The translations under genes and the position numbers were made by a program. A stretch of DNA of 56,149 bases from Chara braunii (Eukaryota; Plantae; Charophyceae): the NCBI GenBank assembly GCA_003427395.1, contig BFEA01000029.1:1474976-1531124 (forward strand), in the 5' to 3' direction. The notes below the pieces were generated by a model. It did not search any database, was not told where the DNA came from, and saw nothing but the letters and a program-made list of their open reading frames with translations. Shown here piece by piece: positions 3,720 to 43,504 of this stretch; position 1 is the stretch's first letter; every line of letters begins with the position of its first letter.

Positions 3720-4225
3720 CTGCGAACAGATTCTCGGAGAATAACGGAAAAAACATTTGGACGAAGATGACTTTTTTAAGACTACGAATTGTTTTGCAGA
3801 GAATCTTGCCTATTTTTCAGATCCGGGAAGGGGATTTTTTAGGACTTTAAATCTTTTTGTCAATTGAAGAAGTCTTACGTATTTTTTATTTGATTTGGGG
3901 AAGAGACATTAATAGGACTACAAACTTTAATTTCAACCGACGAAATCCAGTTTATTTTTCGGATTTCGAGACTGTGAACAGATTCTCGGAGAATGTCGGG
4001 AAAAACATTTGGATGAAGATGACTTTTTAGGACTACGAAATGTCTTGCAAAGAATCTTGCCTATTTTTCAGATCCAGGGAGGGGATATTTTTAAGACTTT
4101 AAATCTTTTTGTCAATTGAAGAAGTCTCGCGTATTTTTTTTAGATTTGGAGAAGAGACATTTATAGTACTAAAAATCTTAACTTCAACCGACGAACTCCA
4201 GTTTATTTTCCGAATGTCGAGAAGA
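3720..4225 (+). repeat. ~252-bp tandem duplication
   Basis: CTGYGAACAGATTCTCGGAGAAT...AAAAACATTTGGAYGAAGATGACTTTT starts at 3720 and again at ~3972. Confidence 0.88.
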
Positions 4226-6293: not shown

Positions 6294-9200
6294 GTGTACC
6301 AGGTCCTCACTCAATATTAGTCCCATGTTCTGGGTTATTGTTCCCTAGGCTCATCTCATGCTGTAGGTTTGGTTCCAGGATTGTTATCGGCGCGGACCGA
6401 TCCCGGTGGCGTAGCCCTCAGTAAAAGAGGTGCGCCACAGGGCTTTCCATTGGTCCACGCAGACTCGGCGCCCTGCTGTACAGCAGAGCACAACCGGCCT
6501 GTGGCCGTGGTAGCCGCCGGGTTCGCCCTGGGATGCGGAGGTGAAAAGATCAGCGCTGCCCTTTCTACTGCGCGCTGAGCTCCTACTAACCAAGTTATGG
6601 GATAGGTGCATGGGGCAAGTCTCTATCAAAAAGAAAAGACTAGATGAGAGAAGCAAAAGAAAGCAAAATGTGTGAGGGCGGAAAGGAAAACGAAGTGTCT
6701 GAACTCTACTCAGATCGTGGCCTTGGTCTTTGCTTTAATCTGGGTTAATCCAACGATATCGGGCCACTGTACCGTTGAGTTTTCTTTCCTTTCTTTATAA
6801 TTATTGCAATTATTATATTATCATTGAAATTATTGTCACTCACACTCTAAATAAATCCTCCCTACTATCGTTTCACGGAAAGGTCAAGCGATTCGAATTT
6901 TGTGCGCGGCTGTAGTCCGTGGCCCAGACTGATTTGGCCTGCCGCTCGCGTACCGCTGGTTGGGAGGCCTGCTCGAACGCTGTGCGGGGAAAACCCCAAA
7001 AGAGGGGCGACCCGCGACCGCATCGGCAGGAGGCTTGTCACCCCCGTGAAAGAGGGTCATAAGCCCCCTCCTTACCATCGGACACGGGTACCCGGAGGAG
7101 GTAAGCCAGCGGTTTGTTTTGAGGGGGATAAGTGCGCCGTCTGTATTTCGTTATGGGACCGCCACCTCAAAATAGTAGTCGCTTCTCAGTGAGACGGAGT
7201 GACAGGGACTAGTAGCAGAAGGGTTGTGGATATCGAGGCCATAAGTTATTTTCTTTTCTCTCTCTTGGTTTCCTTTTGTGTAAAATCACAATTTTAAAAT
7301 TATCCCGTTTATTTTCAAATTTTCACCAAGTCTTGAAGCTTCCCGTTTAGAACGCAGGTAACTCGGTATGAGGCAGATCTATAAAAGACAGCAGGCGGGG
7401 GGCTGAGCAGGGTGAACTATCCCGCCACGTCTAGTGTTGCTGGTCTGAGGGCCTGAGTGGAGCGGTGAATAGCCTGGGCCATCTGAGTGTGTGCACCCAG
7501 GGGTGGGTCCGTGGCTGTCTCTGAGTAGTTATGGCCTTGCACGGGTATAGACCCTGCTACTGGTATCACAAGATTCGGTGGAAGCCTATGTCCGGGGAGG
7601 GGCCCTGGATCACGGCAATACTCAACTACGATGGGGGAGACGAGATAAGACTGAGGATTAACGTGGAGGGGGGAAAAGAGGAGGAGATGCGGACTGATGG
7701 AAGGCTACAGAACACTATCACAGAGACGAAAGACCGTGTGGAGGGGCGCTGCAGAAGGGACGGCGTGACGACGAAAATGCAGGTAACGGTCTCGTATCAT
7801 GAGACCGAGACCTCGATGGAGACGGCGGATTGGGAGCAGGCCCACCTGGAACGGGACTCAGGTGGGGAGAGCGAGATGAGCGAGGCGGAGGATCGGGAGA
7901 CGGACCTCAGGTCCTGGAATAGACCAGGCGAGATCGAGAGGCATCACCGGACGGTGAAGCCAGTGGAGCGCGGACCCGAGGCCAGCTCTCATCAACCGGC
8001 GCCCAGAGGCCGAGGGACGGGAGAGAGACAAGGCAGAGGAAAAGGACGTGTGTGAAGGGGGCAAGTGAGCTGTGAGGCGGCTACAGGGACACACGAGGCA
8101 CAGTCGAAGGCACGTGAAGTGAGCGAGAGGAGGGATTTTGGCAAGCGTAGCGGGGTCGAGGTCAACGCGCAACAGTACGGTCTCTGAGGACGGGAGACAA
8201 GAAAGGGGGAATGAGTGGCCGACAGAGGGCAAGCTACACGTGGCAGCCCGAGGAGAGAGGGGGAGTCAACAAATGTGGGCGAGTTGCAGGCAGGAACGCG
8301 CGAACTCAGGAGATGTTGTTGACGTCAACTATAGCCTCAGAGTTCGCACTCAAGGCTTTGAGTGTGCAGAGCCTGTTGAGAGATATCTGGAGGTCAAACG
8401 TGTAGTTGTTCTGAGAAACGGGGAGTGAGCTACGGGGCAGCTACGCAGATACATGGGTGACACGTGGCACGACCCGAGGAGAGAGAGACGTCGGTCAGCT
8501 AGAAGGGGAGAGAGTGTGAGCGTTACGGAACCTGAAAGTGGGGAGGCAGGTGTAGCTGCACGGGCACACTTGCGACTGGTGGTGTGGTCCGGGGAGAGAA
8601 AGGGCGATCAACGAGAGGTGTGTGGAGGATGTGATGAGCTTGCGGAGCGCAATTGGTGTCAATCGTAGCAAGAGACATGTGTGAGGCGCGCGCAACCACG
8701 ACCAAGAACGCGCACGCAACGAGAGAGTCAACGGTGGAGAGGGGAGAGAACTGAACGCGTGTGCTGAGATGTTGACGTCAACTGCTGGGAGATTAGAGCA
8801 TGGCCGATCAAAGTTGATCATTCCCTGTGAGGGGACCTTGGATTGAACTCTGATTGGTGATTGGATGGTCTTTCGTGAGCTGGCTGTTTTCCTTTTGACG
8901 CTCACACATCACGGACAGTGAGAGCTGCGGACGACGTGTCTTGGCTGTTTAATTGGCTGGAGCTGCATTTATCACGGGCCATGTTGAGCGTGATTGCAAA
9001 GGGGCCAGTGAAGAGGTTCACAAGAGTAATGGTCAGAGCACAACTCGTATCGCCAGGTCAAGAAGAACGGTGAAGACGGGCCTGCAGACACACCCTGGAC
9101 AACTGGCTTGTCGTGTGGCCAGACCATTTTTGTTGCCTTAGGATGGGCAGATTCATATGGCGCATGCGGAAACGGTGTGAGAGAGAGAGGGTGAACCATC

Positions 9201-12200
9201 TCGCGTGCAAAGAGATTCCAAGACTGGCTAAGCCCGTGGGGAGGAGGAAGGGTCTCTTGCTTTTGAGGACGATTTCGCTTACCGACTGGCGCTCCCTCTC
9301 TAACGACCGCCTGTCTTGCCACTTTCGTGTGACTTCCAACCTGTAAAGGAGATGGCAATCAAGGGTTAATGACACATCTTTCCCTTATAACAGCCTTGAT
9401 CGAGCCTTCAGATAAGATGTCGGTCTTTGCAGAATAATTCCCCTCTTGTTTTCACTAATTTTAGTTTACCTTTTAGTTTAGTTAGTCAGTACGACTGATT
9501 GTTATTGATTGACCATGTTGCATCGAAAGAAAGAAATAAGTCCTCGGTAGACTGTGTAAGTGGGCGAACAAAAGAGTAGCACCTGTGCGTAATAGCGATT
9601 CAAAATGTGCTAGCCACGAAGGAAACTCAATGTGTGGGAGCCTAGTTTAAGTGTTTAGTGTGGCTGGAATTGAATACGTCGGTATTAGCTTGACTAGTCA
9701 CTTGTCCATTTGAATGTGCTATTTGTATTGGGTGTTTTGCTTGGTTTCTTGGTAAGGTCAATGAGACACGCAACCTTTGTATCCGTGTGCTTAAGCTCTG
9801 TGAAGACAAAGATTACGAGTGCAATTGGGGTTTAAACCCTTCTTTTCCCTTTTCATCTGCGAGAGACTGCATAGTGTTGACTGCACTGTGAGACTACACT
9901 GCACAACTACATTGTGTAACTGTGTGAGCGTATGACCACTTGGGCTTGCACATGCTCGCTCGATCGAATGTCAACTAGTAGGTGTACGGGCTCACTTGTG
10001 ACGTGAGAAGGATTGAGCGCACGAACACATAAGCAGGCATGTGCCCTTGTGAATAGGCGAATGTATGCTTGAATGTGTGCAGATTTGGTGAGTGCAAGTA
10101 GGTGTCAGTCCGAGTATGCGAGTCTACCTTTGGCTTACCGAATGTGCCTGCATGTCAAAGTGGGAGTATGGAGACAATTTTCTTTTTGATTGCTATCTAA
10201 GCCTTGGGATACTACTTTCTGTAAACCCTGTGTTGAATGGCTTAGCTGACCACATGGTAAAGTCAAAAAAACGAGCAGCCTTTGCATTCGTGTGCCCTGT
10301 GCCATGTGATCGCCAGAAGTATTTGTTTCGTATAACTGCACAGTGCGATTGCTTCGTGTGACTGCGTCGTGTGATTGTTTCGTATAACTGCACAGTGCGA
10401 TTGCTTCGTGCGACTGCGTCGTGTGATTGCTTCGTATAACTGCACGGTGCACTTGCTTCGTGTGATCACACGGAACGATTGATTCGAGGGACCAAGCCGT
10501 GTGATTAGCTTCGCGTGACTGCAGGAGGTTGTGAGTGTACTGACTTGCGCGTGTTCACGGGAAAGGAAGGTTTGCCTATAGAGGTAAGAGTTAGAATGTG
10601 CCCTGAGGTAAATCAAGTGCGTGACTTTGTAAGCCTGCAAATGGCTGTGTGAGTTTGCGGTAGCTTCGAAAGGTCTGCAAACGCATTGTTTGGTTAGTAG
10701 AACAACCAATCTCTTTCCTTTCTCATGAGTTTAGAAGCTGAGTGATGAAACGATATGGAACGAAAGAACGGTTGAAAAGGGTGGCTTACCTGATCGCCAA
10801 GTTCTTGCTTGACGGGGACTGATACCTCCTGCCTCTAGTAGCCTCGGGATGTTCACTCAGTTGATTTACTAGTTTGTTTGGAGCGTTTTGATGACTTAAC
10901 TATCCTAATAAAAAGAAAGATACATCTGCAGATACACGTACAATTCGCCCCCAGACAATTGACAGTCAGGCAGAACAGGTTCAGGGGGCTCCACATCTGC
11001 CCAACTCCCGACAAAACTAATGTTCAAGAGGGGAAATTAAGGTGTACTCTACATGTCAAGAGATGAGTATTTGACGGAACAGTTTAGTGTCCCGAATATC
11101 TTTTTAGGGTCACACGCAGCGTACAGGTAGCTCTAATTCTGAGACTGTACTAAACTCGTCACTGAAAACTCTGAGTACTAACCTAGAGCCCATAATATTG
11201 GTCATGCTTGACACGGGTGCTTGCACTCGTGGCTAGCGTGATGTGCCCTTGAAGGGGAAAGATGGAGAAAAGAGATACAGTAAGAGTAACCTATTCGCTG
11301 CATCAGGACATGACCGAAGGTTGGGAAGAGAGAGTGACTGAGAGTTTTCATAGCCAGAAAAGGCTTATGAAGGAACGAGCCGTGATGTTAGTGAGAGGTC
11401 AGACAGTCATGGAGTATACTTGCTACATTTATGGGTCTGACGGGAAATTACACAGTACTCTCTCATCAGTGGAATCCATTGAGGAGGCAAAGAGGATGGT
11501 TGTCAGAGATCGGTGAGAAAGTTTAATCTTCAATTCGGTGAGAGAGGGATTCTCATTAGACAAAGACAGATCAAAAGGAAAGGTCGAGGTTCAGAAAACA
11601 GGTTGCAACCGAACACAGAGTAAGTCATTGAGTCACGAACAGTAAATGAAACAACTAGCAAACAAGGGATAATTATCAGTTAATTGACAACATTCACTTA
11701 TCCGTCATCAGTCAACCAACAAAACTTTATTTCCCGTCAGCGATTAATCAAGGATGCTCAGTTCCTGATCATGGGTTGATCAACAGTTGAACGACACTTG
11801 ATTGGCGATCAGTCAGTGCTCAGATAATAATCTCAGCGGTATTCAACTTCACAGTTTAGCTATCAACCAACAGCCAGGAAAAACATCAATCGGAGTAAGA
11901 CTTTAGAAAGGTAATCAAAACAGCGACACTCAACAAACAATCTGTCAGCAAGCAATTAGTTTTCAGACCAGTAGTTGAACAGTTTCCTGGTCAGCGATCA
12001 TTCAATCCTCTAATCAGCATTGAGAATCAGCATTCAAAAGTCAGCAATCAGTCAGCTTTCAGTTCAGCAATCAGATCAGCAAATAATCAGTCCAAGCAAT
12101 CGTGTCAAGTGTTCTGATTAACAGTAATCAGAAAGGCAATCAGATCGGTAAGCAGTTTAGCAATCAGATCAGCAACCGAATCTGCAATCGAATCGGCAAC

Positions 12201-14550: not shown

Positions 14551-16384
14551 CGTTTCCTGACAAAATATCGTTGATATGGCATGATGTGCACCGCATCCTT
14601 CTGGATGTGCCGGTCTGCTCTGCAGTGATAAACTCTGGCCTAACGGGGCAGTTCAAAAATGGATGAATTTGGCTTCCCAAGTCAGATCGGTACATCCCAA
14701 GGACGTGTCAGAGAAATTTGGTTTGGAAACATACAGGGGGTGCAATGAGTATCGAACATGAGGGGCAAAGGGGTTCTGGGCCGTTCAAGTTGTTCACAAA
14801 TGCAGGTTTATTTAAGGTTGTTAGATTTGAGTGATTCTAATTTGTTGGATTGATCGATGCAATAGCTGGAAGTTTGCAGCGGGGGGTCCCACAAAAAACG
14901 ATTTGCAGCACGGGTTCCCACAAACAGTTTGCAGCGTGTCGGCGAACAATGGAACACGAGGGCAGCAAACACTGTGGACGTAGAGTGTTGATTTATGTGA
15001 ACATCTCACTATGTCAGTGAACAAGGAAACACAAGGAGGAATATCGCGCTTGTTTTTTTTTCATAATTTTTTTTATCCTTTTTGTTTACAGGGATCTCTT
15101 GGCCTCTGCCCGACCGCCTGGGTAACCGAGGTGACCCCAGCGGTTGGTAACACATGTTCGTGAGTTGCTTTACCCTTGTTCTTTTATTTTTTGCTAGGTA
15201 TTGATAAAAACGTAAGCTTTGACACCTTTTTTCTTTTTTAGGGATTGATAGAGAGAACGAGAGGAATGGAGGATCAACATGGATCATTAATCAACACGAT
15301 AATATTGTCGCGCTTGTTTTTTTGCTTATATTCTGTATAGCACACCGAATATGTTCGGCGCCCCACCGAGCAACCGAACATGTTCGGATGCTCGGCCGAG
15401 CATAAATTAGGGGGTTGCCAAGCGCATCCTCGTGTGTGTGGGGTGTGTGGGGTGTGTGGGGTGTGTGGGGTGTGTGTGGGGTGAGTGTGTGTTCGTGTGT
15501 GGTGTATGTGTGTGTGTGTAATTTGAGGAGTGATGAGCAATGGTCGTCAAGGCTCCCAAACTCCTATATGTATAAAACAAAAAATTTAAAATGAAAAAAT
15601 AAAAATGTTCAGGCTCTGTCTATTTTGGGGCACTTTCGGGCTGGGTGCCGAGCCTTCGGGTTTGGTCACCGAGCCCGAATGCGATGCTACGCAGCTTATG
15701 TTTTAAAGTGCAACAAGTTGGTCTTCAAATTGATAATTAAACACAAAAAAAATCAAAACGTTTGCGTAATTTTGAAAAATGGTGTATCTGGCCTAATCTA
15801 TTACAAAATAAAGATCGACGTCATTTGATCTCAAAGATCGAGCACTCGAGATAACCCCTTTGTGATATTGTACAGGCAATGTTAGCTTGACATAAGTGAT
15901 TTGATTAAGCAACATGGGAACTAAAGCCTAAAGTTGCCTTTTTATTTTATTTGAAGGACTGATTCCCTTCACATAAAAAACGAATTACTTATTTAAGGAC
16001 TATAGGAAATATCAACCTTATATATACACTGCACACTTAAGTGCCACCACCCGAATTTGATCAATAATGTCGATTGAACTTCGAACGTTCGCTAACCCCT
16101 TCCAAAGCATTTGGCGGAATATTTTTTTTTCCTTTCTCATTTTTCTAAATGCAAAAGTTGTTTGAGACGGGAGGAAAACTACCCACTGAACACCCTTGAA
16201 GCCCTTTGTCCCCACAATGTGCGCATGCATGTGTGTGAGTGTGTGTGAGTGTGTGTGCGTGTGTGCGTGTGTGCGTGTGTGCGTGTGTGAGTGTATGTGT
16301 ATGTGTGCATGTGTGTGAATATGAGTGTGTATATGGTCGAGGGGGGGGGGGGGGGGGTTGCGATTGGTATCGCCTTGGTACTCT

Positions 16385-17225: not shown

Positions 17226-18849
17226 TGTCGACCGGTAGAAGTATCTGCCGGCCTGCGGAATCGACCTCGTCCCCTCCCGCATCTGTCACCCACAGGGAGG
17301 CCGGTTCCGGGCTCCTGTAACCTGTAAAAAAAGAACGTTAATACTTGACAAAATCAAGACGAGGGGATAAGGGATAACAAGGAGCGATATGAAATAAACA
17401 GAGTCTCTGAAACTATTATTCTGATTCCACTCATTCCCCCACACCGAAGTCTGTTTAATCCCTCACAAATCCATTGTACTAGGCTTGCATTTTATTCCAG
17501 TGTCGATTGATCTCCTCTCGTTTCTACGGTTAGTCCCTTTCCTCACCCTGCAGCGTCAGTAACAGTTGTCCGCCTTCAGGGATCAGGGCTCAGAGGTCTG
17601 ACCTCCGCAAATTGTTTATGTGATTGATATCTGCCAACAGATTCAGGGTATGATCCGCTGCCACTATCGCTGAATCTGAGTCTGCCTAGGTCTCAGCTCA
17701 ACCCCTAACTTGAGTCCACGAATCTTGGTGAGTTCATTTCCTGAGGCGACGGTGTCGGCTGATTGGGCTCAAGCCCGCTGAGACCAGGAGGTTGAATCAT
17801 GTGCTTGTTGTTTCTGTTCCCAGACGATATCTGTTTGCTGGTTCGATTCCTGCTGGCCCAAGTTTACCGTGATCGGCAGGCTAAGTCCTTGAGTCCGCCC
17901 ATCCGCCGATCCGCGTTTTGCTGGCACGTGATTCGCAGACCTGCGGCTGTTCACTTTGGCTTTGCCGCCTGGAGATCCGCTACCGCTGAGCGGTTTTCTG
18001 AATTTTGGTCTCGGGTCCGATCTGTATCTGGTCTTAGTCTGTTGAGGTCTGGTATCAATCTGTCTTGAATCTGATCAAAGTTCTGAACTTAGTGGTCCTC
18101 TGTGGTCTCAAGTCTGAGTCCAAAGCCGCAGCTTCAAACCTGAGTCCCGCTGCTGCGGCTTGAGCCTGATTTCTGGAATCTACAATCCCCTGTTCCCCGA
18201 GTGTGAGTTTCGCCGCTGCCTGCCATAGTCTGCACGTTCTCGCTCCTGAGGTTGTTCTTTGAAAAGGATCTTGAGTCCAATCCCGAGTTTAATCCCAGGT
18301 TTGTCCCTGTAAGAGGGTTAAGCTGGCTTTTGCAGACCGGGATTTGCAGAGTTTTCTCCACGGTGTCTCTGAGTTTGATGTCTCCGCATTTCTGTCGTTG
18401 CTCTTTGCAAAGCTTTTGCCGAATTTGTTTCATTGCCCAATTCCTGATCCTCCTGTGCTCTCGCAGGGGACTGTTGTACCCGGATTGTTGGTTTAGGCCG
18501 TTGGTTCAGAACAGGAGTCACAATTTTTTATTTTTTTTTGACAATTTTTTTATATTATAAAATCACGAGGCCGGGGCCCTCACAGTCTACCCGGAAAAAG
18601 CTGGGGCCAATACCCAGTTTAGGCTAGGCTGGAAACCGGGTCCAGCATCCCTCATTTCTTGAGTAGTGATCAATCACTTGAAATAATAAGAATTTCCTCT
18701 GGAGTGTAGCTGAAAATGCTACACTAACTGGCGAATCAGTTCTAACTAATATAAGGACCAAAAATTAACAAAATCTACTACTAACCTGTACAGCAAAGTC
18801 TGCGAAAAAAATTATTTACAATTTGTACAATAGCACGAAAAAGAAGAAA

Positions 18850-31102: not shown

Positions 31103-31982
31103 CTTTCTCTCAGGAATATTAAGCTCACTCCTTACTTCCGAGAGTCAAGTTCTCTCCGCAACTTCTCAATGTTTCAACCCTCCATCAATCTGGAAGTGTA
31201 CTCTCTCAGACGTTGTGTAGCTCAGCCCGACTGATGAGCTCATAGATCCCTACGACAGGCCGCCACTGGACCCGCCTATATCCCTGACAACGTCAACAGG
31301 CCTAGAAGAGAACCGCCCTCTGGCGTATCTCCTCCTACCCTTATGTCGAAAGAGAGGTTGATCTCATGTCGCCATCGTCGCTGGCCTACCGATCCCGAGA
31401 GCTATCCCTTGACGTGAGCCGGCCAACTCGTGCGTCATAGGGTCGGACCAAAGTCACACGCTCACGGAACGGTGGTATTTCCCTCGTGCAATCCTATCCG
31501 GCACCATGTCTCTACTCGGCCCACCTCAGACATGGATTTACCCGGGACGCTTTCCCCCGACACTGTGTAGTGTCCTAATCAGACCTCCCGCTAACAATCG
31601 GATCAGCTAGCCTGTCTATTCGCCCCAACTCCTTGCGATCCGGGGCGCTTCTCCCCTCCCCTTCAGTCCCTCCAGTTCTTCCCCTGCTTACAATTTTCTC
31701 TATTGGAGTCAGATCGGGGTAGACTGACCAAAGGGTAGGGATAAAACCAGAATTATCTCGCTCGATCACAATCACAAGAAGGATGGAAGGAAAAAATGCA
31801 TGAGATCACCAAATGCAAGAATCAAGAATATCACGAGCATTGCAAAAATCAACGTCTCACCGGGGCATGCCGTTCGCTGGTTGGCTGATTGCTCGTCGCC
31901 TGCTCCGCTCTAGTCGTACTCCTCTCCTGATCCTCTCATGTCCCCGCGGTTACAGGCGGACCAAAGTCCCGAGAGGCAGCCT

Positions 31983-32000
31983 TCCCCGGCAACGGCGCCA
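31983..32000 (-). promoter_or_regulatory. Primer-binding site TGGCGCCGTTGCCGGGGA (tRNA-Asp type, as in Athila-like elements)
   Basis: Lies 1 nt after the ...CGACA end of the 5' LTR on the minus strand. Confidence 0.88.
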
Positions 32001-32971
32001 CTGTCGACCGGTAGAAGTATTTGCCGGCCTGCGGAATCGACCTCGTCCCCTCCCGCGTCTGTCACCCACGGGGAGGCCGGTTCCGGGCTCCTGTAACCTG
32101 TAAAAAAATAACGTTAATACTTGACAAAATAAAGACAAGGGGATAAGGGATAACAAGGAGCGATACGAAATAAACAGAGTCACTGAAACTATTATTCTAA
32201 GTCCACTCATTCCCCCACACTGAAGTTTGTTTAATCCCTCACAAATCCACTGTACTAGGCTTGCATTTTATTCCAGTGTCGATTGATCTCCTCTCGTTTC
32301 TACGGTTAGGGTCTCGTTAGACACTCCTAAAAGAATCCTAAAAGATTTAGGACGAGTCCTAAAAGTTTTTTAGGATTTCGCGCGGCGTCATTACACGCAA
32401 TCCTAAAAATCGTCTTTTAGGAATCGTCCTAAAAGGTTTCCTGCGGCCCGTTTTCATACATATATACGCAGCCGCATCGCGGATGTCCGTCCAGTCCTGG
32501 CTGGTGTTCGTGGTCCACACTGCGGTGGGGGTTTGGCGGCTGCCGACGGGTTGGTGAAGCGCGCGGTTGCCGAGACCTTCAAAATTTGAAATTTGAATTT
32601 TGGCGGACACAGGCTGGCAGGCTGGAGGACGGCAAGGCGACGCGTGTGATGTACAAGACACGGTGGTGGCGGCCCCTTCGCCGTGGGTAACCAGCTTTGC
32701 TGTACGGGGGAATTGTGAGGCGCGCGGCGCATCTTCCTGCTCGGCGCATCTTCACGTACGGACGTGCCGTCGCCTTCGCTGTGGAAGCGTAGAGCAGCAG
32801 GCACCTCTTCGCCATCGCGCTTGTTCCATCTCCTGAGGTAGTGCACAGCTGCGGGATGTCTACGGGTCACACAGTGTGCGTGGTGTCCAGTGGCAACGCT
32901 GAGCAGCGGGCGTATCTTGGGCGGTTGCGGCAGGAGCGAAGGTGTGGCGGGTAAGCGATTTGCGGAGATGG

Positions 32972-34324
32972 ATGGCGGAGATGGATGGCGGAGGCTGCGG
33001 CCACGGTCTGCGGGCGGAAGAGATGGAGGCGGTGGCGATTGCTGTGTCTACCGTCGTCCTAGAGACGATGAACGAGATGTCGTCGTCGTCACGAGACGTG
33101 GCGAAGCAGCTCTGTAAACGACGAGCGCTGTTGTAGAGCTATGCCAAAGCGGCGGATTGCGTGGCAACGTGTGAGGCAGTGGTCCAGTTGTGTGTCGCAC
33201 TGTCATCTGGCGTTTTCCCCCGGCAGACCTCGCGATGGTGGATCAAACGACGTACTGGCGGAACATGGGAGGACCTCCGGCAAAGCGATGACGCCACGGA
33301 CGAGTACTACCGCCAAAAGTTGCACATGTCGATGGCCATGTTCAAGCAGATCGTAGCCGCTCTCGCCGCGTTCGTGGAGAAGAAGGTCACGCACTACAGG
33401 ACGCCATTGCCAGCGGAGCAGGTTATCGCTTTCGCGTTGTACAGGTGGGCGTTCGGGGAGACGTACGAGAGTGGCACTTCAGCTTTCGGCATCGGTAGGG
33501 TCACTGGACTGCAGGCCGTCCGCGACGTCACTTCGGCGCTGCTGCGGGTGTACCTCGACACCATCAAGTGGCCAGTGGGCCGCAGACGTGCGCAGATTCT
33601 CCGCACTTTCTGTGACAAGGGATTCCCGAACTGCTTCGGCGCCATCGACTGCACACACATCTACATCGACAAGCCCGCCGACGCACCTTCTGCCAACTAC
33701 TACGACCGCAACCACAAGTTCTCAGTGCAGGCGCAGGTCGTCGTGGATTTGGATCTCCGGATCCTAGACGTCCACGTCGGATACCCGGGGAGTGTGCACG
33801 GCGTCCGCGTCCTGCACAATTCCCAGCTCTGGAGGCGCGCGCAGACTGGCGAGCTCTTCGACACAGCTCCAGAGAATTTGTCGCACGGTGTCGTCACGCT
33901 AGGATACCTGCTGGGCGACAACGGTTATCCTGTTGCCTGTCCATGGATCGTGCAGCCATATGGAGGAATAGACCAAGGTCCTGTTGAGGAGCGCTTCGAC
34001 AACCGGCAGAAGGTGGCGCGGGGGTGTGTGGAGAAGGCGTTCGGCCGACTGAAGTGCATGTGGCGTCTGTTCTTGCGCACCCACAAGACGAACCTGGAAA
34101 CATTGCCACAACAATTCGTCGCCGTCTGCACTCTCCACCACATCCTCCTCGATGCGGGGATCGACTTCGATGAGAACCTGTTATGGGAGGTGGGTCCGGA
34201 CGGCGTCAGGCGCAGAGTGGACTTGGCCATTGTCGGGGGCGGCGGAGGCGGGCAGCCACAGAGCTCCAACGTCGAGGGGGAGTTGTTGCGGAACGTGCTT
34301 CGCGACCGCCTGGCTTTGATGTAG
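32972..34324 (+). pseudogene. Harbinger/HARBI1-like DDE transposase
   Basis: Motifs GFPNCFGAIDCTH, PGSVHGVRV (usually HD), LLGDNGY and VEKAFGRLK. The upstream in-frame segment (32942-33136) is separated by a TAG at 33134-33136. Confidence 0.92.
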
Positions 34325-35694
34325 GNNNNNNNNNNNNNNNNNNNNNNNNNNNNNNNNNNNNNNNNNNNNNNNNNNNNNNNNNNNNNNNNNNNNNNNNNNN
34401 NNNNNNNNNNNNNNNNNNNNNNNNNNNNNNNNNNNNNNNNNNNNNNNNNNNNNNNNNNNNNNNNNNNNNNNNNNNNNNNNNNNNNNNNNNNNNNNNNNNN
34501 NNNNNNNNNNNNNNNNNNNNNNNNNNNNNNNNNNNNNNNNNNNNNNNNNNNNNNNNNNNNNNNNNNNNNNNNNNNNNNNNNNNNNNNNNNNNNNNNNNNN
34601 NNNNNNNNNNNNNNNNNNNNNNNNNNNNNNNNNNNNNNNNNNNNNNNNNNNNNNNNNNNNNNNNNNNNNNNNNNNNNNNNNNNNNNNNNNNNNNNNNNNN
34701 NNNNNNNNNNNNNNNNNNNNNNNNNNNNNNNNNNNNNNNNNNNNNNNNNNNNNNNNNNNNNNNNNNNNNNNNNNNNNNNNNNNNNNNNNNNNNNNNNNNN
34801 NNNNNNNNNNNNNNNNNNNNNNNNNNNNNNNNNNNNNNNNNNNNNNNNNNNNNNNNNNNNNNNNNNNNNNNNNNNNNNNNNNNNNNNNNNNNNNNNNNNN
34901 NNNNNNNNNNNNNNNNNNNNNNNNNNNNNNNNNNNNNNNNNNNNNNNNNNNNNNNNNNNNNNNNNNNNNNNNNNNNNNNNNNNNNNNNNNNNNNNNNNNN
35001 NNNNNNNNNNNNNNNNNNNNNNNNNNNNNNNNNNNNNNNNNNNNNNNNNNNNNNNNNNNNNNNNNNNNNNNNNNNNNNNNNNNNNNNNNNNNNNNNNNNN
35101 NNNNNNNNNNNNNNNNNNNNNNNNNNNNNNNNNNNNNNNNNNNNNNNNNNNNNNNNNNNNNNNNNNNNNNNNNNNNNNNNNNNNNNNNNNNNNNNNNNNN
35201 NNNNNNNNNNNNNNNNNNNNNNNNNNNNNNNNNNNNNNNNNNNNNNNNNNNNNNNNNNNNNNNNNNNNNNNNNNNNNNNNNNNNNNNNNNNNNNNTGTTT
35301 GGGGTCATCGTGCAATCATTCCGCCAAAGACACGAGAAGAAGGGACACGTCACAGGATAAAAAGTGTGCGCTGCAAGCGCTATGAAGTTCTTTCGCAGGT
35401 AACTGCGATGATAGAAACACAAAACACGTTTCGAAGTAATGAAGCGGTCATCGGCTACAACGACAGACAAGCTAAACACCTACACTAACCTCCACATGCA
35501 CGATCGAGTCCAGTGAACCCGTTGTCGTGCCACGGCCAACACACTATACAACTCCGCCACCGACGACGCTCCGGGGGAATCCCTCCTACCCCCGCACTAA
35601 ACAGCCGCGCAGCACGCACCGTCCCAGTTCCATGCGACGCCCATAACGCCCAGCCACTTCCACCTACGCAACCACTCTCAACAGCCCTGTTTGG

Positions 35695-35731
<37 letters not shown>

Positions 35732-35816
35732 GCAACAGTCCAACCGCGGTGAAGCCCCTCACGTCGATGTGCCACGTGGACATGTTCGAGGACTATAACA
35801 ACCGCCGCCCCACCCG

Positions 35817-37460
35817 CTACACGCCTTCTTTCTTGTCGTCGTCGCCGTCGTCATCGGTGGGGCCCGAACCCAACCAATCAAGCCTCTTGCAATCCTCCGG
35901 ACCCGTTACGCTGGCGTCGTGGCCGAAAGTAATGCCGCAGGGTGCCCATTGAGGGATGTAGTTGGGGTGCTCGCCAAACGTGGGGTTCGCCTTCCCGAGC
36001 CTCTCGGTGACGGCTTTCGAGGCGCGGACGACGGATCGTCTATGGTCGAAGGAGCGATGCATGGACGCGACCAGTGTAGGCCTGGCCAGCAAGTTGACGG
36101 AGTAGAACGCCTCGTAGTGGCTGCGGAAGTCGTCTCCCGCCATGTGCATTATCCACATTGCCGCCGCCAACAGAAGTCTGAAGCAGTCAGCCACCCGACA
36201 AAGACGGTCGTAGGAGATGAAATCGCCGTCAATGTGCGCTCCCATCTGCACCGCCGCGCGGAATGTTTGGGCGATGCAGATGGCGGTCGACTCCTGGTAT
36301 GCCGCCATGTCGTCGTCGTCGGGTCTGTCATTGATATGGGCGCCAGCGAACCACAGTAGCAAGTCCATGTTGAGATCTATCGTGTGGCCGCAGATGGGCG
36401 CGCTGACGACGTTGGACCAGTCCTCGGCGTACCACATAGCACGCGCGATGTTCGTTGCTACGGACTCCAGTGCATACTGGTAAGCCAGGTTGTACCCCCT
36501 TGCGCGGTTGCCGGAGTTGAAAACCCAGCCATGCAGGACGCGCAAAGCCACGTTCTCCACTTTCGCCGCACGGGTGATCGCTTGCTGCAGCTGCGATGGG
36601 TCGGAGATCCTTGCTACCCTGGTGCTCGACTTCGGCAGGATGACGCTGCGAGAGACGGTAGTCGCTGGAAGGCCGCTGGCGATGGCGACGAAGTATTCCC
36701 GCGTCTCGTGGATGATGTTGTACAATCTCCGCCCCTCCCCCGTCCTCCAGAACGCTTTGTCATCCACCCAGAGCAGGGCGCGATCGATGAGCTCTCTGCT
36801 CATGGTTTCCTTGCGCACCCGGCTCGGACCAACATCGCCGCCCTCCCGATCGATTGTCTTCTCGCCACGCGCGTCCTCTCTCGCCGTCGTCGCAGCTGCT
36901 GCCTCCTCTCTCGCCGTCGCCACGGGGGCCGAGTTCACTGTGGCGGTCCCGCCCGCAGCACCTGCCGCCTCGCCCTCGATTGCGCGTCGCTCTGGCACGA
37001 CTTCCTTTTCCGGGAGGCGTGTAGTCATCAACGGCGCTGCGGAGTCTTGTGCAAGATTGCGCTGGCGACGTCTTTCCAACGTCTCGTCATCATCGCCTTC
37101 CGCCACGATGACGGCAGCCTTGTCTTTCCTTGCATCGCGGCCACGCGCCTGCTGCGCCTCGGGTGCAGGGGAGAGCATCCTCTTCGACGCGCTGTGATCA
37201 GAAGCTCGCTGGCAAGCGCTTTGTCGCACCGCGGATGCCGTCGCCTCCGCCTGCGGTTCCTCCATCCCGAAGTCGTCGTCAGACTCCATTTCCGCTGCGG
37301 TCGCCCAACCTTCGGAACCACGAGCAGGCACGTTTCCTGACGCTTCACCGGAGCGCACCTTCTTCGATTTCGGGATATGGCACCGACCTTTCGCCTGCGC
37401 AAGCCCGACGGCGGCTGCGGCATCGCGCTTCGTGCCACGGGCGCTCCCTCGCGTCGACAT
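35817..37460 (-). CDS. Harbinger-borne third ORF of unknown function (~547 aa from the first ATG)
   Basis: Uninterrupted frame 35817-37508 inside the TIRs. The N-terminal half is A/E/R-rich low complexity with a basic KSKKVR patch. The C-terminal ~320 aa are Trp/aromatic-rich and look globular. Confidence 0.75.
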   Translation of the reverse strand: MSTRGSARGTKRDAAAAVGLAQAKGRCHIPKSKKVRSGEASGNVPARGSEGWATAAEMESDDDFGMEEPQAEATASAVRQSACQRASDHSASKRMLSPAPEAQQARGRDARKDKAAVIVAEGDDDETLERRRQRNLAQDSAAPLMTTRLPEKEVVPERRAIEGEAAGAAGGTATVNSAPVATAREEAAAATTAREDARGEKTIDREGGDVGPSRVRKETMSRELIDRALLWVDDKAFWRTGEGRRLYNIIHETREYFVAIASGLPATTVSRSVILPKSSTRVARISDPSQLQQAITRAAKVENVALRVLHGWVFNSGNRARGYNLAYQYALESVATNIARAMWYAEDWSNVVSAPICGHTIDLNMDLLLWFAGAHINDRPDDDDMAAYQESTAICIAQTFRAAVQMGAHIDGDFISYDRLCRVADCFRLLLAAAMWIMHMAGDDFRSHYEAFYSVNLLARPTLVASMHRSFDHRRSVVRASKAVTERLGKANPTFGEHPNYIPQWAPCGITFGHDASVTGPEDCKRLDWLGSGPTDDDGDDDKKEGV

Positions 37461-37730
37461 GCTGGCCGCGGATCTGTGGTCACAACCTTTTGCCCCTCCT
37501 TTCAACACTTGGAAGCGCTTCGCCGACCACCGTTCCTATCTCCCAGCGATGTGCTGCGGCGCGGCGACGACGAGGAAGAATCCTCAACGGCAGGGCAGAA
37601 GACGACGACGCAGACGTGCAGGGTAGAAGGACGACGACCCCGCTGAAGCAGAAGAACCGTCCTTCGACGACGCTTTACGGCAAGAAGATTTACGGTGGGA
37701 AGGGCGGGAACGGCGGAGAGAAGCTTCACG

Positions 37731-37892
37731 GCGAGAAGCTTTACGGCGAGAAGGGCGACGTAGCGCGACGAGATTGCTCCGCGGCGGGAAGCTTTACAGC
37801 GAGAAGGGCGACGTAGCGCGGCGAGATTGCTCCGCGGCGAGAAGCTTTATGGCGAGAAGGGCGACGTAGCGCGGCGAGATTGCTCCGCGGTG
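37731..37892 (+). repeat. 53-bp GC-rich tandem repeat running into a gap
   Basis: GCGAGAAGCTTTACGGCGAGAAGGGCGACGTAGCGCGRCGAGATTGCTCCGCG at 37731, 37784 and 37837. Confidence 0.9.
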
Positions 37893-38779
37893 ANNNNNNN
37901 NNNNNNNNNNNNNNNNNNNNNNNNNNNNNNNNNNNNNNNNNNNNNNNNNNNNNNNNNNNNNNNNNNNNNNNNNNNNNNNNNNNNNNNNNNNNNNNNNNNN
38001 NNNNNNNNNNNNNNNNNNNNNNNNNNNNNNNNNNNNNNNNNNNNNNNNNNNNNNNNNNNNNNNNNNNNNNNNNNNNNNNNNNNNNNNNNNNNNNNNNNNN
38101 NNNNNNNNNNNNNNNNNNNNNNNNNNNNNNNNNNNNNNNNNNNNNNNNNNNNNNNNNNNNNNNNNNNNNNNNNNNNNNNNNNNNNNNNNNNNNNNNNNNN
38201 NNNNNNNNNNNNNNNNNNNNNNNNNNNNNNNNNNNNNNNNNNNNNNNNNNNNNNNNNNNNNNNNNNNNNNNNNNNNNNNNNNNNNNNNNNNNNNNNNNNN
38301 NNNNNNNNNNNNNNNNNNNNNNNNNNNNNNNNNNNNNNNNNNNNNNNNNNNNNNNNNNNNNNNNNNNNNNNNNNNNNNNNNNNNNNNNNNNNNNNNNNNN
38401 NNNNNNNNNNNNNNNNNNNNNNNNNNNNNNNNNNNNNNNNNNNNNNNNNNNNNNNNNNNNNNNNNNNNNNNNNNNNNNNNNNNNNNNNNNNNNNNNNNNN
38501 NNNNNNNNNNNNNNNNNNNNNNNNNNNNNNNNNNNNNNNNNNNNNNNNNNNNNNNNNNNNNNNNNNNNNNNNNNNNNNNNNNNNNNNNNNNNNNNNNNNN
38601 NNNNNNNNNNNNNNNNNNNNNNNNNNNNNNNNNNNNNNNNNNNNNNNNNNNNNNNNNNNNNNNNNNNNNNNNNNNNNNNNNNNNNNNNNNNNNNNNNNNN
38701 NNNNNNNNNNNNNNNNNNNNNNNNNNNNNNNNNNNNNNNNNNNNNNNNNNNNNNNNNNNNNNNNNNNNNNNNNNNNNNN

Positions 38780-38835
<56 letters not shown>

Positions 38836-39067
38836 TTTCATCAATACAACGATTGACACCACGAAATGCGGCAAATCCAGCGCAGACGGCTCCCCTCATC
38901 TGTGGCAACCATTTCGCAAGCAGAATCATATCGTGCAGTCTGCCTCCATCATCTTACGCAGAAGAAACCGACATATAGAAAAAAATTAAATAACAAAACA
39001 AAAAAACAATCTTCATGGCTACACCGACCGCAATGGCAGCAACGTAATCAAGAAACGATTTGATGGG

Positions 39068-40991
39068 CTACATCGTCGAACGACCACGGATGGCGGCAAC
39101 GATCTCTTAAAGTGCGTGACACATCATCCTCTGCGTATCGTCGGACGCCGCATAGTGCGCGTTTTGGACCGCTACTTCCTGCGCGAGTATGTCGCACTGC
39201 TGTTCTTGTATGTCGCATTGCCTCGATGAAATGTTGCATTGCCGTTTGCTGGACGATTCAATCATCGACGACATCAGTTCGCCATTGCGGTCCATGACAT
39301 CAGCGATGGACTCCAGCGCCTGTTGGCGCGCATTCGTACGCTTCCCGCCTCCGGCAACACTGCAAGCGTTCACGTCGGAGTCCCTTGTAGAAGATCTTTC
39401 TTAAGCGCAACCGTCACCACCGCCCTCACTATCAACAGACTCCCCACCACCCGCTCCTCTCCAGGGCAGCTGCACCCCGTCCGGACTGCCGGTGTCGGCG
39501 ATGTTGGGAGGGAAAATAGTATGGTTCCCCAACATGCCGGAGTGGATCTCGTTGTACAGCACCCTCTCCATCCGGAACTTGAAGTTGTGCTCCTTCCTTT
39601 CGTCGTTGGACAACTTGAAGAAATCTGGTCGCCCGCTCGCGTTCTGAAACCTCTGTATCTTCTTGTAGTTTTGGAACAAATTGTCCCATTTCTTCATGCA
39701 GTCGTCTGCGTCTTTAGGGCTCCCACCGTTCGCCATGCGCTTCGCAATGTCGACCCACTTCCACTCCTTCGTCCGCATCCGGCCGTAATTGTGGCCTCTT
39801 CATGGGAGGCCTTGGTAAATCTATGCCAGTAACAAGGTTGACTTTCTTAATTGGCACTCTTTCTCTTTGTGGAGTTCCTCCTTTTGCTTGTTTTTGGTCA
39901 AAAGATAAAATTATTGCTGATGCTTGGAAATATAATTTTAATTTAGGCTTGATTGCTTGGATTACAGCGGGATTACCTGGCTTTTATATGTTCAGCCCAG
40001 CGAGGTGCATCTCCTGCTCCCGCTTGCATCTGACGAGGAGCATCTGCTCGTCTGTCGACCAGTACGTCGCAGACTTCCCTCCGTCGTCGGTGACGCCACC
40101 TCTGCCGCCACGGCCAACGGATTGACCATGGCCACCACGGTTGCTGCGTCCAATACCCCTACCACCCGTCTTCCCCACAGGCCGAACAACATTGTCGTCG
40201 TCGTCGTCCCCCGCTTCGACTTCCTCCCTGAATCCATCGTCGGCATCGTCACCGCCACAACCATCGTCGTCGCCGACATCGCTGTGTGCCCGCATGTTCG
40301 ACACGCCTCGAGTGATGTTCTCCACACTGGCTCTTGAACCCGCCAGTGGTCTGCAGGCGCCCTCGTCCCTCCCTTCGGGTGGCGCGGGTGTTGTTCGGTT
40401 CAGCATTGACGAGCGTGCACCGCTGGTGCGCAGGGACGCTGCTGCGGCAGCAGTGCGCACGTCCCAGTTATCCGTCAATCGTTCCCCGGACGGCGCACTC
40501 GATACATGCTGCCGGGCTGCTGGCGAAGACCCGACACCGCCAACGACGGACGCGCCGCCACGTACTGTGGAAGGTCCCGTNTGCTCCCTTCGAGGCTGCT
40601 GCAGGCCACGTGCGGAAGCATGGGCGGCGNTGATGACCGTGCNGCTCGCCTCCNTGGCACCGCCAGAACTCAAGCCGAACCGGAGATCAACTCCCCCGTC
40701 GTCGTCGTCTCCCAACCCTTGCTGCAGGAGTGACGTGTACTNGCCTCGTTCGTTGCTCGCCGACCCGCCTACGAGCACCGTCTGCGACAACAGCTGCGTN
40801 GACCCGCTGGCNAGAGGAAACGTTGGAAGTTCATCCCCCTCCGGCTCCTCGTCCGAGGGAGGCAGCGGCGTCTCCCACGACGGCAGATGGCTGTACATGG
40901 ACGGGTCGTACCGCCGTGAAGGCTCCGTCGTCGCAGGTCTTCTTCCGCCCTCAGCTGCAGGCAGAATAGCGCGTGCCTTCATGCCCGCCAT
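39068..40991 (-). pseudogene. Harbinger Myb/SANT (trihelix-like) DNA-binding protein, disrupted
   Basis: [23 protein letters not shown] | [21 protein letters not shown]...DDCMKKWDNLFQNYKKI followed by a C-terminal coiled coil. Split by a 196-bp insert; in-frame TAA stops at 39401-39403 and 39107-39109. Confidence 0.9.
39797..39992 (+). pseudogene. ndhF: Plastid ndhF fragment (NUPT)
   Basis: AT-rich island in GC-rich DNA. It translates as [43 protein letters not shown]...[14 protein letters not shown], matching the plastid NdhF signature GTLSLCGIPPxACFWSKD...TAGLTxFYMF. Confidence 0.92.
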
Positions 40992-43504
40992 GGGACGTTC
41001 CTCTTGAAGCACAGCGCGTTTCGTCGACGCCCTGCGCTTTCAACGTTGCTTCCACGGCCGGCACGACAAGCACACGTGGAGGAAGACGACAAAGAGGAAA
41101 ACGACCACCACGAGCAGCAGCAGCAGAGGCAATCTCCTCTGCAAATCTGCCATGAATTCGACGTCGACAGGCGACCTTGCACGTGACGTCCTGCTGAACT
41201 TTCTCCTTGCATGCCCGCGGACAAGGCCGCTGGACCTTCATATGCCGTCGACCGCCAGCGAAGACGACAAANGTTGGCGCCNCCGATTCAAAAACTGACC
41301 GTTGGCGCCCACGCCGCCTCCGTGTGTCGTCGTGCAGACGTCTGGGAACTCCTCCGTTGCCTGCACCCGAGCCAACGGTCTGCAACGGCCGCCCGCCTGG
41401 CCACGCTTCGCCCCGCCTGCTCCACCCCACTGTCCAACGGCTACCAGTGGGGGCCGTTGCCGTCATCGACCGCCAGAAAACCTCCGATGTCCGCCCACCG
41501 GCCCGATGGACCTCTCCTGGACCAGCTCCTCCGTGTCGACGGTGCCATTCTCACGACGCGACGACTCCGTGAAATGCGGGAATCCTAAATTTTTCAGTAG
41601 GTCCGGGGCTACTGGAAAATTTAGGACGATTTGGCTGGGGAATCCTAAATCTTTTAGGACGAGTCCTAACGCCGTTTTCACATTTTCGATTCCCGCGTCC
41701 CATTTAGGACTGCGTGCAACCAAGACGCAATCCTAAAAACAGGAACTTTTAGGAGTGTCTAACGAGACCCTTAGTCCCTCTCCTCACCCTGCAGCGTCAG
41801 TAACAGTTGCCCGCCTTCAGGGATCAGGGCTCGGAGGTCTGACCTCCACAAATTGTTTCTGTGATTGATATCTGCTAACAGATTCGGGGTCTGATCTTGG
41901 CAGATTCTAGGCCCGCTGGTTGCAGCTCCGCTGCCACTATCGCTGAATCTGAGTCTGCCTAGGTCTCAGCTCAACCCCTAACTTGAGTCCACGAATCTTG
42001 GTGAGTTCATTTCCTGAGGCGACGGTGTCGGCTGACTGGGCTCAAGCCCGCTGAGACCAGGAGGTTGAATCATGTGCTTGTTGTTTCTGTTCCCAGATGA
42101 TATCTGTTTGCTGGTTCGATTCCTGCTGGCCCAAGTTTACCGTGATCGGCAGGCTAAGTCCTTGAGTCCGCCCATCCGCTGATCCGCGTTTGGCTGGCAC
42201 GTGATTCGCAGACCGGCGGCTGTTCACTTTGGCTTTGCCGCCCGGAGATCGCTACCGCTGAGCGGTTTTCTGAATTTTGGTCTCTGGTCCGATCTTTATC
42301 TGGTCTTAGTCTGTTGAGGTCTGGTATCAATCTGTCTTGAATCTGATCAAAGTTCTGAACTTAGTGGTCCTATGTGGTCTCAAGTCTGAGTCCAAAGCCG
42401 CAGCTTCAAACCTGAGTCCCGCTGCTGCGGCTAGAGCCTGATTTCTGGAATCTGCAATCCCCTGTTCCCCGAGTCTGAGTTTCGCCGCTGCCTGCCATAG
42501 TCTGCAGGTTCTCGCTCCTGAGGCTGTTCTTTGAAAAGGATCTTGAGTCCAATCCCGAGTTTGATCCCAGGTTTGTCCCTGTAAGAGGGTTAAGCTGGCC
42601 TTTGCAGACCGGGATTTGCAGAGTTTTCTCCACGGTGTCTCTGAGTTTGCTGTCTCAGCATTTCTGTCGCTGCTCTTTGCAAAGCTTCTGCCGAATTTGT
42701 TTCATTGCCCAATTCCTGATCCTCCTGTGCTCTCGCAGGGGACTGTTGTACCCGGACTGTTGGTTTAGGCCGTTGGTTCAGACCAGGAGTCACAATTTTA
42801 CTGATTACGATTTTCATAGCCTCTGTGTACTATTTGACCACCCAGAATTGTTACCAGCCACTGCGTATTACTAAAGTAGAATAAATAAATAGGGAAAATA
42901 ATGAAACCAGTGGTATTGACAGAGTAGACAACAGACAACCATCTCCTTCCTCTAGAAGTGAGGAATCGCCCCTCCCATGGCGAAAACTTCCCTCACGTGG
43001 CAGGCTTCCAGCACCCAAGTATTAATGGAGTTCGTGAATTATCCAATGGCATTTTTGAGATTTTATGCGTTGATAATGGCAATGTTGGAAACCCCGGTTG
43101 GGGAACGCTCCGCTCACTACCTTCCTGGCTTTTCTTACTCTTTTCTCCCCTCTTGAAAGTCTCTCCATGCCATGCCACTCACTCCTATCTCCACGGGCCA
43201 GGTAGTGAAAAAGATTTATTTGGAGCAAGTGAATGTGAAATGAGACTCGCTGGAGAAGGATCTCCCTTCCTTCAGTATTCTGTCTCCTTGCTCCATGCAT
43301 TCCCTCACAACTGTGTGTCTCCTGTCTGTGTGTATTCCTTTGTTCTATCCCTGCGTCCGTGTTCCACACATGTATCTCTTGAGATCGAAGTGCCTGATGA
43401 ATCCTGGTCCAGAACTTGGCAGGGTGCGTCTGGGAGGCCGAGCCCTGCGATTTGATACCAGCGACTTGGCGATTTTCCATACTCAGAGGAATTCACCAAC
43501 AGTT

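Follow-up and report, generated by a model that had tools for sequence, protein, structure and literature searches.

VANC of VANDAL21, a Mutator-like element of Arabidopsis, is a lineage-restricted, fast-evolving extra gene that serves as the model for an anti-silencing role, and mudrB of maize MuDR is a non-catalytic orphan accessory gene of narrow host range that lies convergent with the transposase gene. PIF/Harbinger elements are textbook two-protein transposons, and Harbinger transposition elsewhere needs only a transposase and a Myb-like protein. Across 836 genomes and 380 PHIS families, a survey likewise describes PIF/Harbinger and its sister groups as encoding two open reading frames (ORFs) (PMC4482050). 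Here we analysed a 56,149-nt stretch of the Chara braunii genome (contig BFEA01000029.1, positions 1,474,976 to 1,531,124; hereafter the window), in which positions 32309-41770 are a complete PIF/Harbinger copy that contains, besides genes for these two proteins, a third long ORF (ORF3; 35817-37460, minus strand; 547 aa plus stop) open from its own ATG.

Like canonical PIF/Harbinger elements (PIF/Pong in plants, Harbinger3_DR in zebrafish), the Chara family has a DDE_Tnp_4 transposase, a separate Myb/SANT-like gene, short terminal inverted repeats (TIRs), a 3-bp TWA target-site duplication (here TTA) and subterminal repeats. It differs from them in a third conserved gene of ~550 aa between the two, and with a third selected ORF at a fixed position in six loci it departs from two-gene coding capacity. 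We consider it likely that the window holds a recent, mutationally dead copy of an abundant three-gene PIF/Harbinger family, in which ORF3 is an integral and selected gene and likely an accessory factor. Intact members would carry three intronless genes between 25-bp TIRs, encoding a Myb/SANT-like protein (~553 aa), ORF3 (~550-580 aa) and a convergent DDE transposase (~455 aa), with ORF3 on the Myb strand ~1.2 kb downstream of the Myb gene. In the full-text literature searched, we found neither a Harbinger with three genes nor this Chara family described.

To describe the family, we examined the genomic DNA around ORF3 homologues whose identity ranges from 94% to 42%. All five further loci with readable flanks (L001, L002, L003, L005 and L006) had the order Myb(+), ORF3(+), transposase(-), the same as in the window, and this order persisted down to 42% ORF3 identity; in L004 the stretch upstream of ORF3 consists of Ns, and the gene model P0007 was not traced to a contig. 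The element in L005 (BFEA01000323.1, 736801-758531, reversed) is intact throughout, with a TIR and a TTA at each end and an intact transposase of 455 aa, and its public annotation consists of three separate single-exon genes of 553, 576 and 455 aa. The L003 copy is 92-94% identical to the window element and has both TIRs; those of L006 were not found, an N gap lying where its right end is expected. Moreover, by gene number, 14 of the 101 public ORF3 gene models are direct neighbours of a transposase model (among the best 120), where chance alone would give 0.45. Identity of the ORF3 domain followed that of the transposase with r=0.89 across 15 element pairs, a descriptive correlation because the pairs are non-independent, and, judged from these alignments, the three genes have diverged together. 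An earlier note, made from the letters of the window, had proposed that ORF3 belongs to a Harbinger lineage as an integral accessory gene; ORF3 homologues do lie within Harbingers in a fixed order, and the proposal is borne out by this order together with the low substitution ratios and the superiority of the ORF3 frame described next.

We estimated the ratio of nonsynonymous to synonymous substitution rates (dN/dS) by the Nei-Gojobori method for pairs of intact or nearly intact copies, taking transposase and Myb genes from the same element pairs. The ratio for ORF3 was 0.24-0.36 overall, 0.15-0.24 in its C-terminal domain and 0.39-0.55 in its N-terminal half, well under 1 and comparable to those of the transposase (~0.20) and the Myb gene (0.21-0.35). 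As the earlier note had remarked, ORF3 shares the high G+C content of both other genes (0.60-0.65, versus 0.46-0.54 in the flanks). On the opposite strand, ORFs of 318, 235 and 146 aa overlap ORF3, as might be seen if its frame were open by chance in GC-rich DNA or were the antisense shadow of a different gene. When the six frames were compared in aligned DNA, however, the ORF3 frame had the lowest dN/dS and zero stops, the antisense frames had higher dN/dS and 8-30 stops across copy pairs, and mismatches at ORF3 third positions were twice those at positions 1 and 2. These observations exclude an antisense shadow, and more than 100 paralogues retain the ORF3 frame, leaving next to no probability for a chance or antisense origin.

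Given that the Myb ORF and ORF3 lie on the same strand, we considered whether ORF3 could be the 3′ part of a Myb/SANT-ORF3 fusion, from whose transcript splicing would remove the Myb stop together with the 1.2-kb spacer, or whether alternative splicing could yield both forms, as it yields TnpA and TnpD in En/Spm. Among the 101 public gene models with ORF3, about one in three joins Myb (PF13837) to ORF3, there is no promoter evidence for ORF3, and the sparse RNA data are compatible with splicing. In these models, however, the junction peptides vary from one to the next (P0003, P0004, P0005, P0008 and P0009) and the ORF3 start is visible inside them. The Myb ORF ends within two codons of ...R(G/E)RS at four of four loci (window, L001, L003 and L005), and the intact L005 copy is annotated as separate single-exon genes. 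The start of ORF3, MS(T/A)RG..RGKKRD, is kept in 13 of the 14 models that reach the N-terminus, and in-frame stops precede its ATG by 2 codons in L005, 4 in L006 and 17 in the window, that is, in three subfamilies. The conserved Myb stop and these in-frame stops therefore exclude read-through. When the window copy is aligned with L001, nucleotide similarity begins at the ORF3 ATG and ends near its stop. From three oligo-dT RNA-seq runs we obtained 14-85 reads across 5.2 kb, of unclear strandedness, most of them <95% alike and hence from paralogues. Three reads extend 25 nt upstream of the ATG and resemble the genomic upstream region of the L001/L004 subfamily; this colinearity argues against a splice acceptor right at the ATG, and no splice joints were seen among the sparse reads. 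A spliced fusion thus appears unlikely to us. By comparison of the loci, ORF3 forms a separate cistron predicted to be translated from its own ATG, and the fused models are probably annotation artefacts that inflate or distort the Chara braunii proteome. Some ORF3 gene models are also merged with reverse transcriptase, SWIM or other transposable-element pieces.

The predicted ORF3 protein has two parts. The N-terminal ~225 aa are of low complexity and disordered-looking, with basic clusters resembling nuclear localization signals (RGKKRD, PKAKRxR) and acidic patches; in subfamilies ~40% identical in the domain it is the layout of this region, not its sequence, that is kept. An acidic DDDEPLE-type motif directly precedes the well-conserved C-terminal ~320 aa, which comprise a predicted all-alpha domain of ~270 aa (residues ~232-510) followed by an acidic tail. 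The earlier note had recognised no domain in this region, and sequence and fold searches alike came back blank. ORF3 matched no Pfam family even at E<=10 (24 members scanned), an ORF3 profile matched no PDB sequence, the only entry being ribosomal S6 at E 0.91, and hhalign revealed no relationship of the domain to the element's own transposase or Myb protein. An AlphaFold2 model of the domain built from 39 paralogues (predicted local distance difference test, pLDDT, 72.7; predicted template-modelling score, pTM, 0.71) is all-helical, its helices grouped in two bundles (about domain residues 20-131 and 165-290); a first model from 24 close paralogues (pLDDT 47.6) had been discarded, and 15 divergent members were added to obtain the present one. 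With this model, Foldseek against PDB gave a best E of 0.12 and template-modelling (TM) scores of <=0.35, and the Atlas shape search gave TM <=0.43. The VIA wide search peaked at Z 8.6 for a designed helical filament, with Z 6.8-7.6 for cytomegalovirus IE1, where helical-bundle noise lies at ~13. DUF6532 and DUF6698, multi-copy basidiomycete proteins, are the nearest neighbours of ORF3 in protein-language-model space (0.92-0.95), and the likeness, a possible lead at most, is confined to the embedding: neither gave a hidden Markov model match at E<=10 (24 members), both were absent from the Atlas shape matches, and the shared-feature counts were 133-158 versus the 170 typical of true family members.

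The same searches bear on whether ORF3 is a captured host-gene fragment or Pack-type passenger that does nothing for the element. Capture of host sequence is common among DNA transposons, and the window copy itself acquired a plastid ndhF fragment, described below. A profile search of 1.84 billion representative proteins (1.84e9) nevertheless returned 126 matches among which no host or foreign homologue turned up, the source having been checked for 10 of the 126, all ten from Chara braunii; in the protein set, 101 of 101 matches to ORF3 were likewise from Chara braunii. ORF3 moreover occupies the same position in all sampled subfamilies, is under purifying selection equal to the transposase's and co-diverges with it. 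We therefore regard a passenger as very unlikely.

Several points weigh against the reading of ORF3 as an integral, selected gene of a three-gene family. The gene-order sample consists of six loci plus gene-number adjacency and is not a genome-wide census; dS is near saturation in the most distant pairs entering the dN/dS estimates; and the element pairs behind the correlation of identities are, as stated, non-independent. The share of gene models that join Myb to ORF3 also counts against it, as does RNA-seq coverage too thin to define transcripts, with which an additional isoform spliced to the Myb gene would be compatible. That ORF3 is absent outside Chara may in part be due to the small number of public Charophyceae genomes, and only the ten profile matches named above were traced to their source. 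Furthermore, the nuclear localization signals are read from sequence only, and a complex prediction combining the transposase, the Myb C-terminal region and the ORF3 domain gave an ipSAE of 0.00, a value that, with the partner's fold uncertain, says nothing either way on binding.

With respect to function, ORF3 would serve the element's own propagation, because it has its own conserved ATG, co-diverges with the other genes and is under purifying selection of similar strength. We picture it as a nuclear accessory factor acting at the interface between element and host rather than in catalysis; candidate roles would be counter-silencing, the choice of chromatin or target, and the assembly or regulation of the transposition complex. 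A host-interface role is suggested because Harbingers elsewhere manage with transposase and Myb alone and ORF3 appears confined to one host lineage, and its make-up of a disordered charged region joined to a helical domain fits a regulatory or scaffolding protein better than an enzyme. Taken together, we hold the host-interface readings to be about evenly balanced against their alternatives. The likeness to VANC, that of an extra lineage-restricted gene beside a DNA-transposon transposase, is the analogy behind the anti-silencing reading in particular, which we hold to be doubtful. VANC belongs to another superfamily, and ORF3 has no sequence or fold similarity to it (Pfam at E<=10, PDB, Atlas). 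ORF3 resembles mudrB in being an orphan of narrow host range convergent with the transposase gene; it differs in that the two are unrelated in sequence and that MuDR is a two-gene element, whereas ORF3 was added to an already two-gene system. A bolder and rather improbable version would have ORF3 as a chromatin or anti-silencing factor of an unseen all-alpha fold, invented within the Charophyceae, that helped the family multiply until Chara's large genome held hundreds of its copies. The earlier note had suggested anti-silencing or targeting as the purpose of ORF3; gene order, dN/dS and frame uphold the accessory gene, and its function stays conjectural.

The ends of the element were as the earlier note had described them. 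The 25-mer GGGTCTCGTTAGACACTCCTAAAAG occurs at 32309-32333 (plus strand) and 41746-41770 (minus strand) with 0 mismatches, where none would be expected by chance, and these are its only two occurrences in the 56-kb window. The TIRs are flanked by TTA target-site duplications at 32306-32308 and 41771-41773; TIRs with a 3-bp TWA duplication, here 25 bp and TTA, are likewise present in L005. We counted 12 copies of the octamer TCCTAAAA in the window, against 2.3 expected window-wide, and 10 of the 12 lie within ~130 bp of the element ends: 7 at the left (32325-32434, both orientations) and 3 at the right (41652-41754). This clustering is the subterminal repeat pattern expected for PIF/Harbinger, and the repeats are probably binding sites of the Myb-like protein. 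The remaining two copies lie outside the element on the minus strand (3837-3844 and 4025-4032), and this pair may mark the end of another Harbinger or a derived miniature inverted-repeat transposable element.

The element sits in one of the two long terminal repeats (LTRs) of an LTR retrotransposon extending over roughly 17-42 kb, the LTR pair lying at ~17226-17900 and at 31909-32308 plus 41774-42173. The sister LTR reads continuously through the left flank, one TTA (17530-17532) and the right flank; because the flanks joined by a single TTA reproduce the sister LTR, this is a bona fide insertion with its empty site preserved. The Harbinger entered the second LTR later than the retrotransposon integrated. 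Since the host LTRs are 95-99% identical and the closest copy of the element differs by a dS of 0.07, the insertion is young.

Both canonical genes of the window copy are disabled. The transposase gene (32972-34324, plus strand), intronless and of the DDE_Tnp_4 / Plant_tran type, matches PF13359 at 9.7e-25 and PF04827 at 7.6e-12 (Pfam, 33161-34324); it is disabled by a single in-frame stop at 33134-33136, and is 58% identical to the intact L005 transposase. The other canonical gene, for a Myb/SANT/trihelix-like protein, occupies ~39071-40991 of the minus strand and ends at its own stop after ...IRGRSTM. It matches PF13837 over 39401-39778, as does the intact L005 Myb protein at 2e-11, and it carries three lesions: 196 bp have been inserted at 39797-39992, the frame shifts near 39400, and the C-terminal coiled-coil region contains a premature stop. 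The insert is plastid ndhF-like (PF00361 at 1.3e-11) and falls within the Myb/SANT domain. RNA reads from paralogues leave out exactly 39797-39992, and one contig from run X1 has the ndhF-like insert in common and diverges past 39992. In addition, all three RNA runs gave 10-17 reads each at 40291-40325, covering only ~35 nt and with unrelated flanking sequence; this looks like a short motif shared with an expressed gene elsewhere, not transcription of the window copy.

As the earlier note had pointed out, ORF3 is open beside two disabled genes; it has 547 codons, whereas the transposase gene has one stop and the Myb gene three lesions. Several host genes derive from PIF/Harbinger (HARBI1/NAIF1, ALP1/ALP2 and HDP1/HDP2). 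An open ORF3 between broken transposase and Myb genes could indicate domestication, that is, host-level selection keeping the window ORF3 open; contigs from run X1, which possibly are not RNA, match the window copy exactly in ORF3 and Myb. Because the insertion is young, however, an open ORF3 in a dead copy needs no special explanation: by a rough estimate, a 547-codon frame would stay open by luck at that age about one time in five, so that an unbroken frame is unremarkable, and the comparison with the closest copy (dS 0.07) gave a dN/dS of 0.44. We accord domestication a very slim probability, and retain the reading of a recently inserted copy in which two genes are dead and ORF3 has stayed open.

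Two assembly gaps interrupt the element outside its coding regions. Gap 1 (34326-35295) separates the stop codons of the convergent transposase gene and ORF3, and its counterpart in L003 is ~965 bp of uninterrupted low-complexity non-coding DNA. Gap 2 (37894-38779) lies within the Myb-ORF3 spacer (37461-39070, minus strand), and its counterpart in L003 is ~641 bp of uninterrupted microsatellite and tandem-repeat DNA. The gaps are 434 nt and 521 nt from ORF3, with none in the coding region, and the ORF3 frame is therefore independent of them. The spacer is fast-evolving, of low complexity and unalignable between subfamilies, and measures 1.15-1.25 kb. In the window it holds a 53-bp tandem repeat (x4.1, 37678-37890) and (AC)27 (38780-38833) beside the gap; the L005 spacer (8784-9360) has an assembly gap too, along with a poly-G run of ~70. 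That the L005 spacer is gapped like that of the window suggests that these repeats defeat the assembler, and because tandem repeats coincide with gaps in both, gap lengths in the spacer are unreliable. The earlier note placed the ORF3 ATG ~1.6 kb past the Myb stop, a distance found in the window that includes an estimated gap of 886 Ns, the gap-free L003 giving ~1.15 kb. Long (CT/GA)n runs also lie between the ORF3 and transposase stops, at 14810-15090 and 15728-16388 in L003 and at 35697-35729 in the window.

Collectively, these findings, of a third orphan protein that one lineage has retained under selection throughout its radiation, widen the coding repertoire of PIF/Harbinger beyond what has been described. 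For Chara braunii, about one third of the gene models that contain ORF3 appear to be artificial fusions, and all of them are transposable-element genes counted in the proteome. As a protein family ORF3 is new: a single genome contains more than 100 paralogues, and no relatives of its predicted fold were detected. To our knowledge, very few transposable-element-encoded factors that deal with the host are known outside Mutator-like elements, and ORF3 is a tractable candidate for such a factor. Were the anti-silencing reading true, ORF3 would be an independently arisen Harbinger counterpart of VANC.

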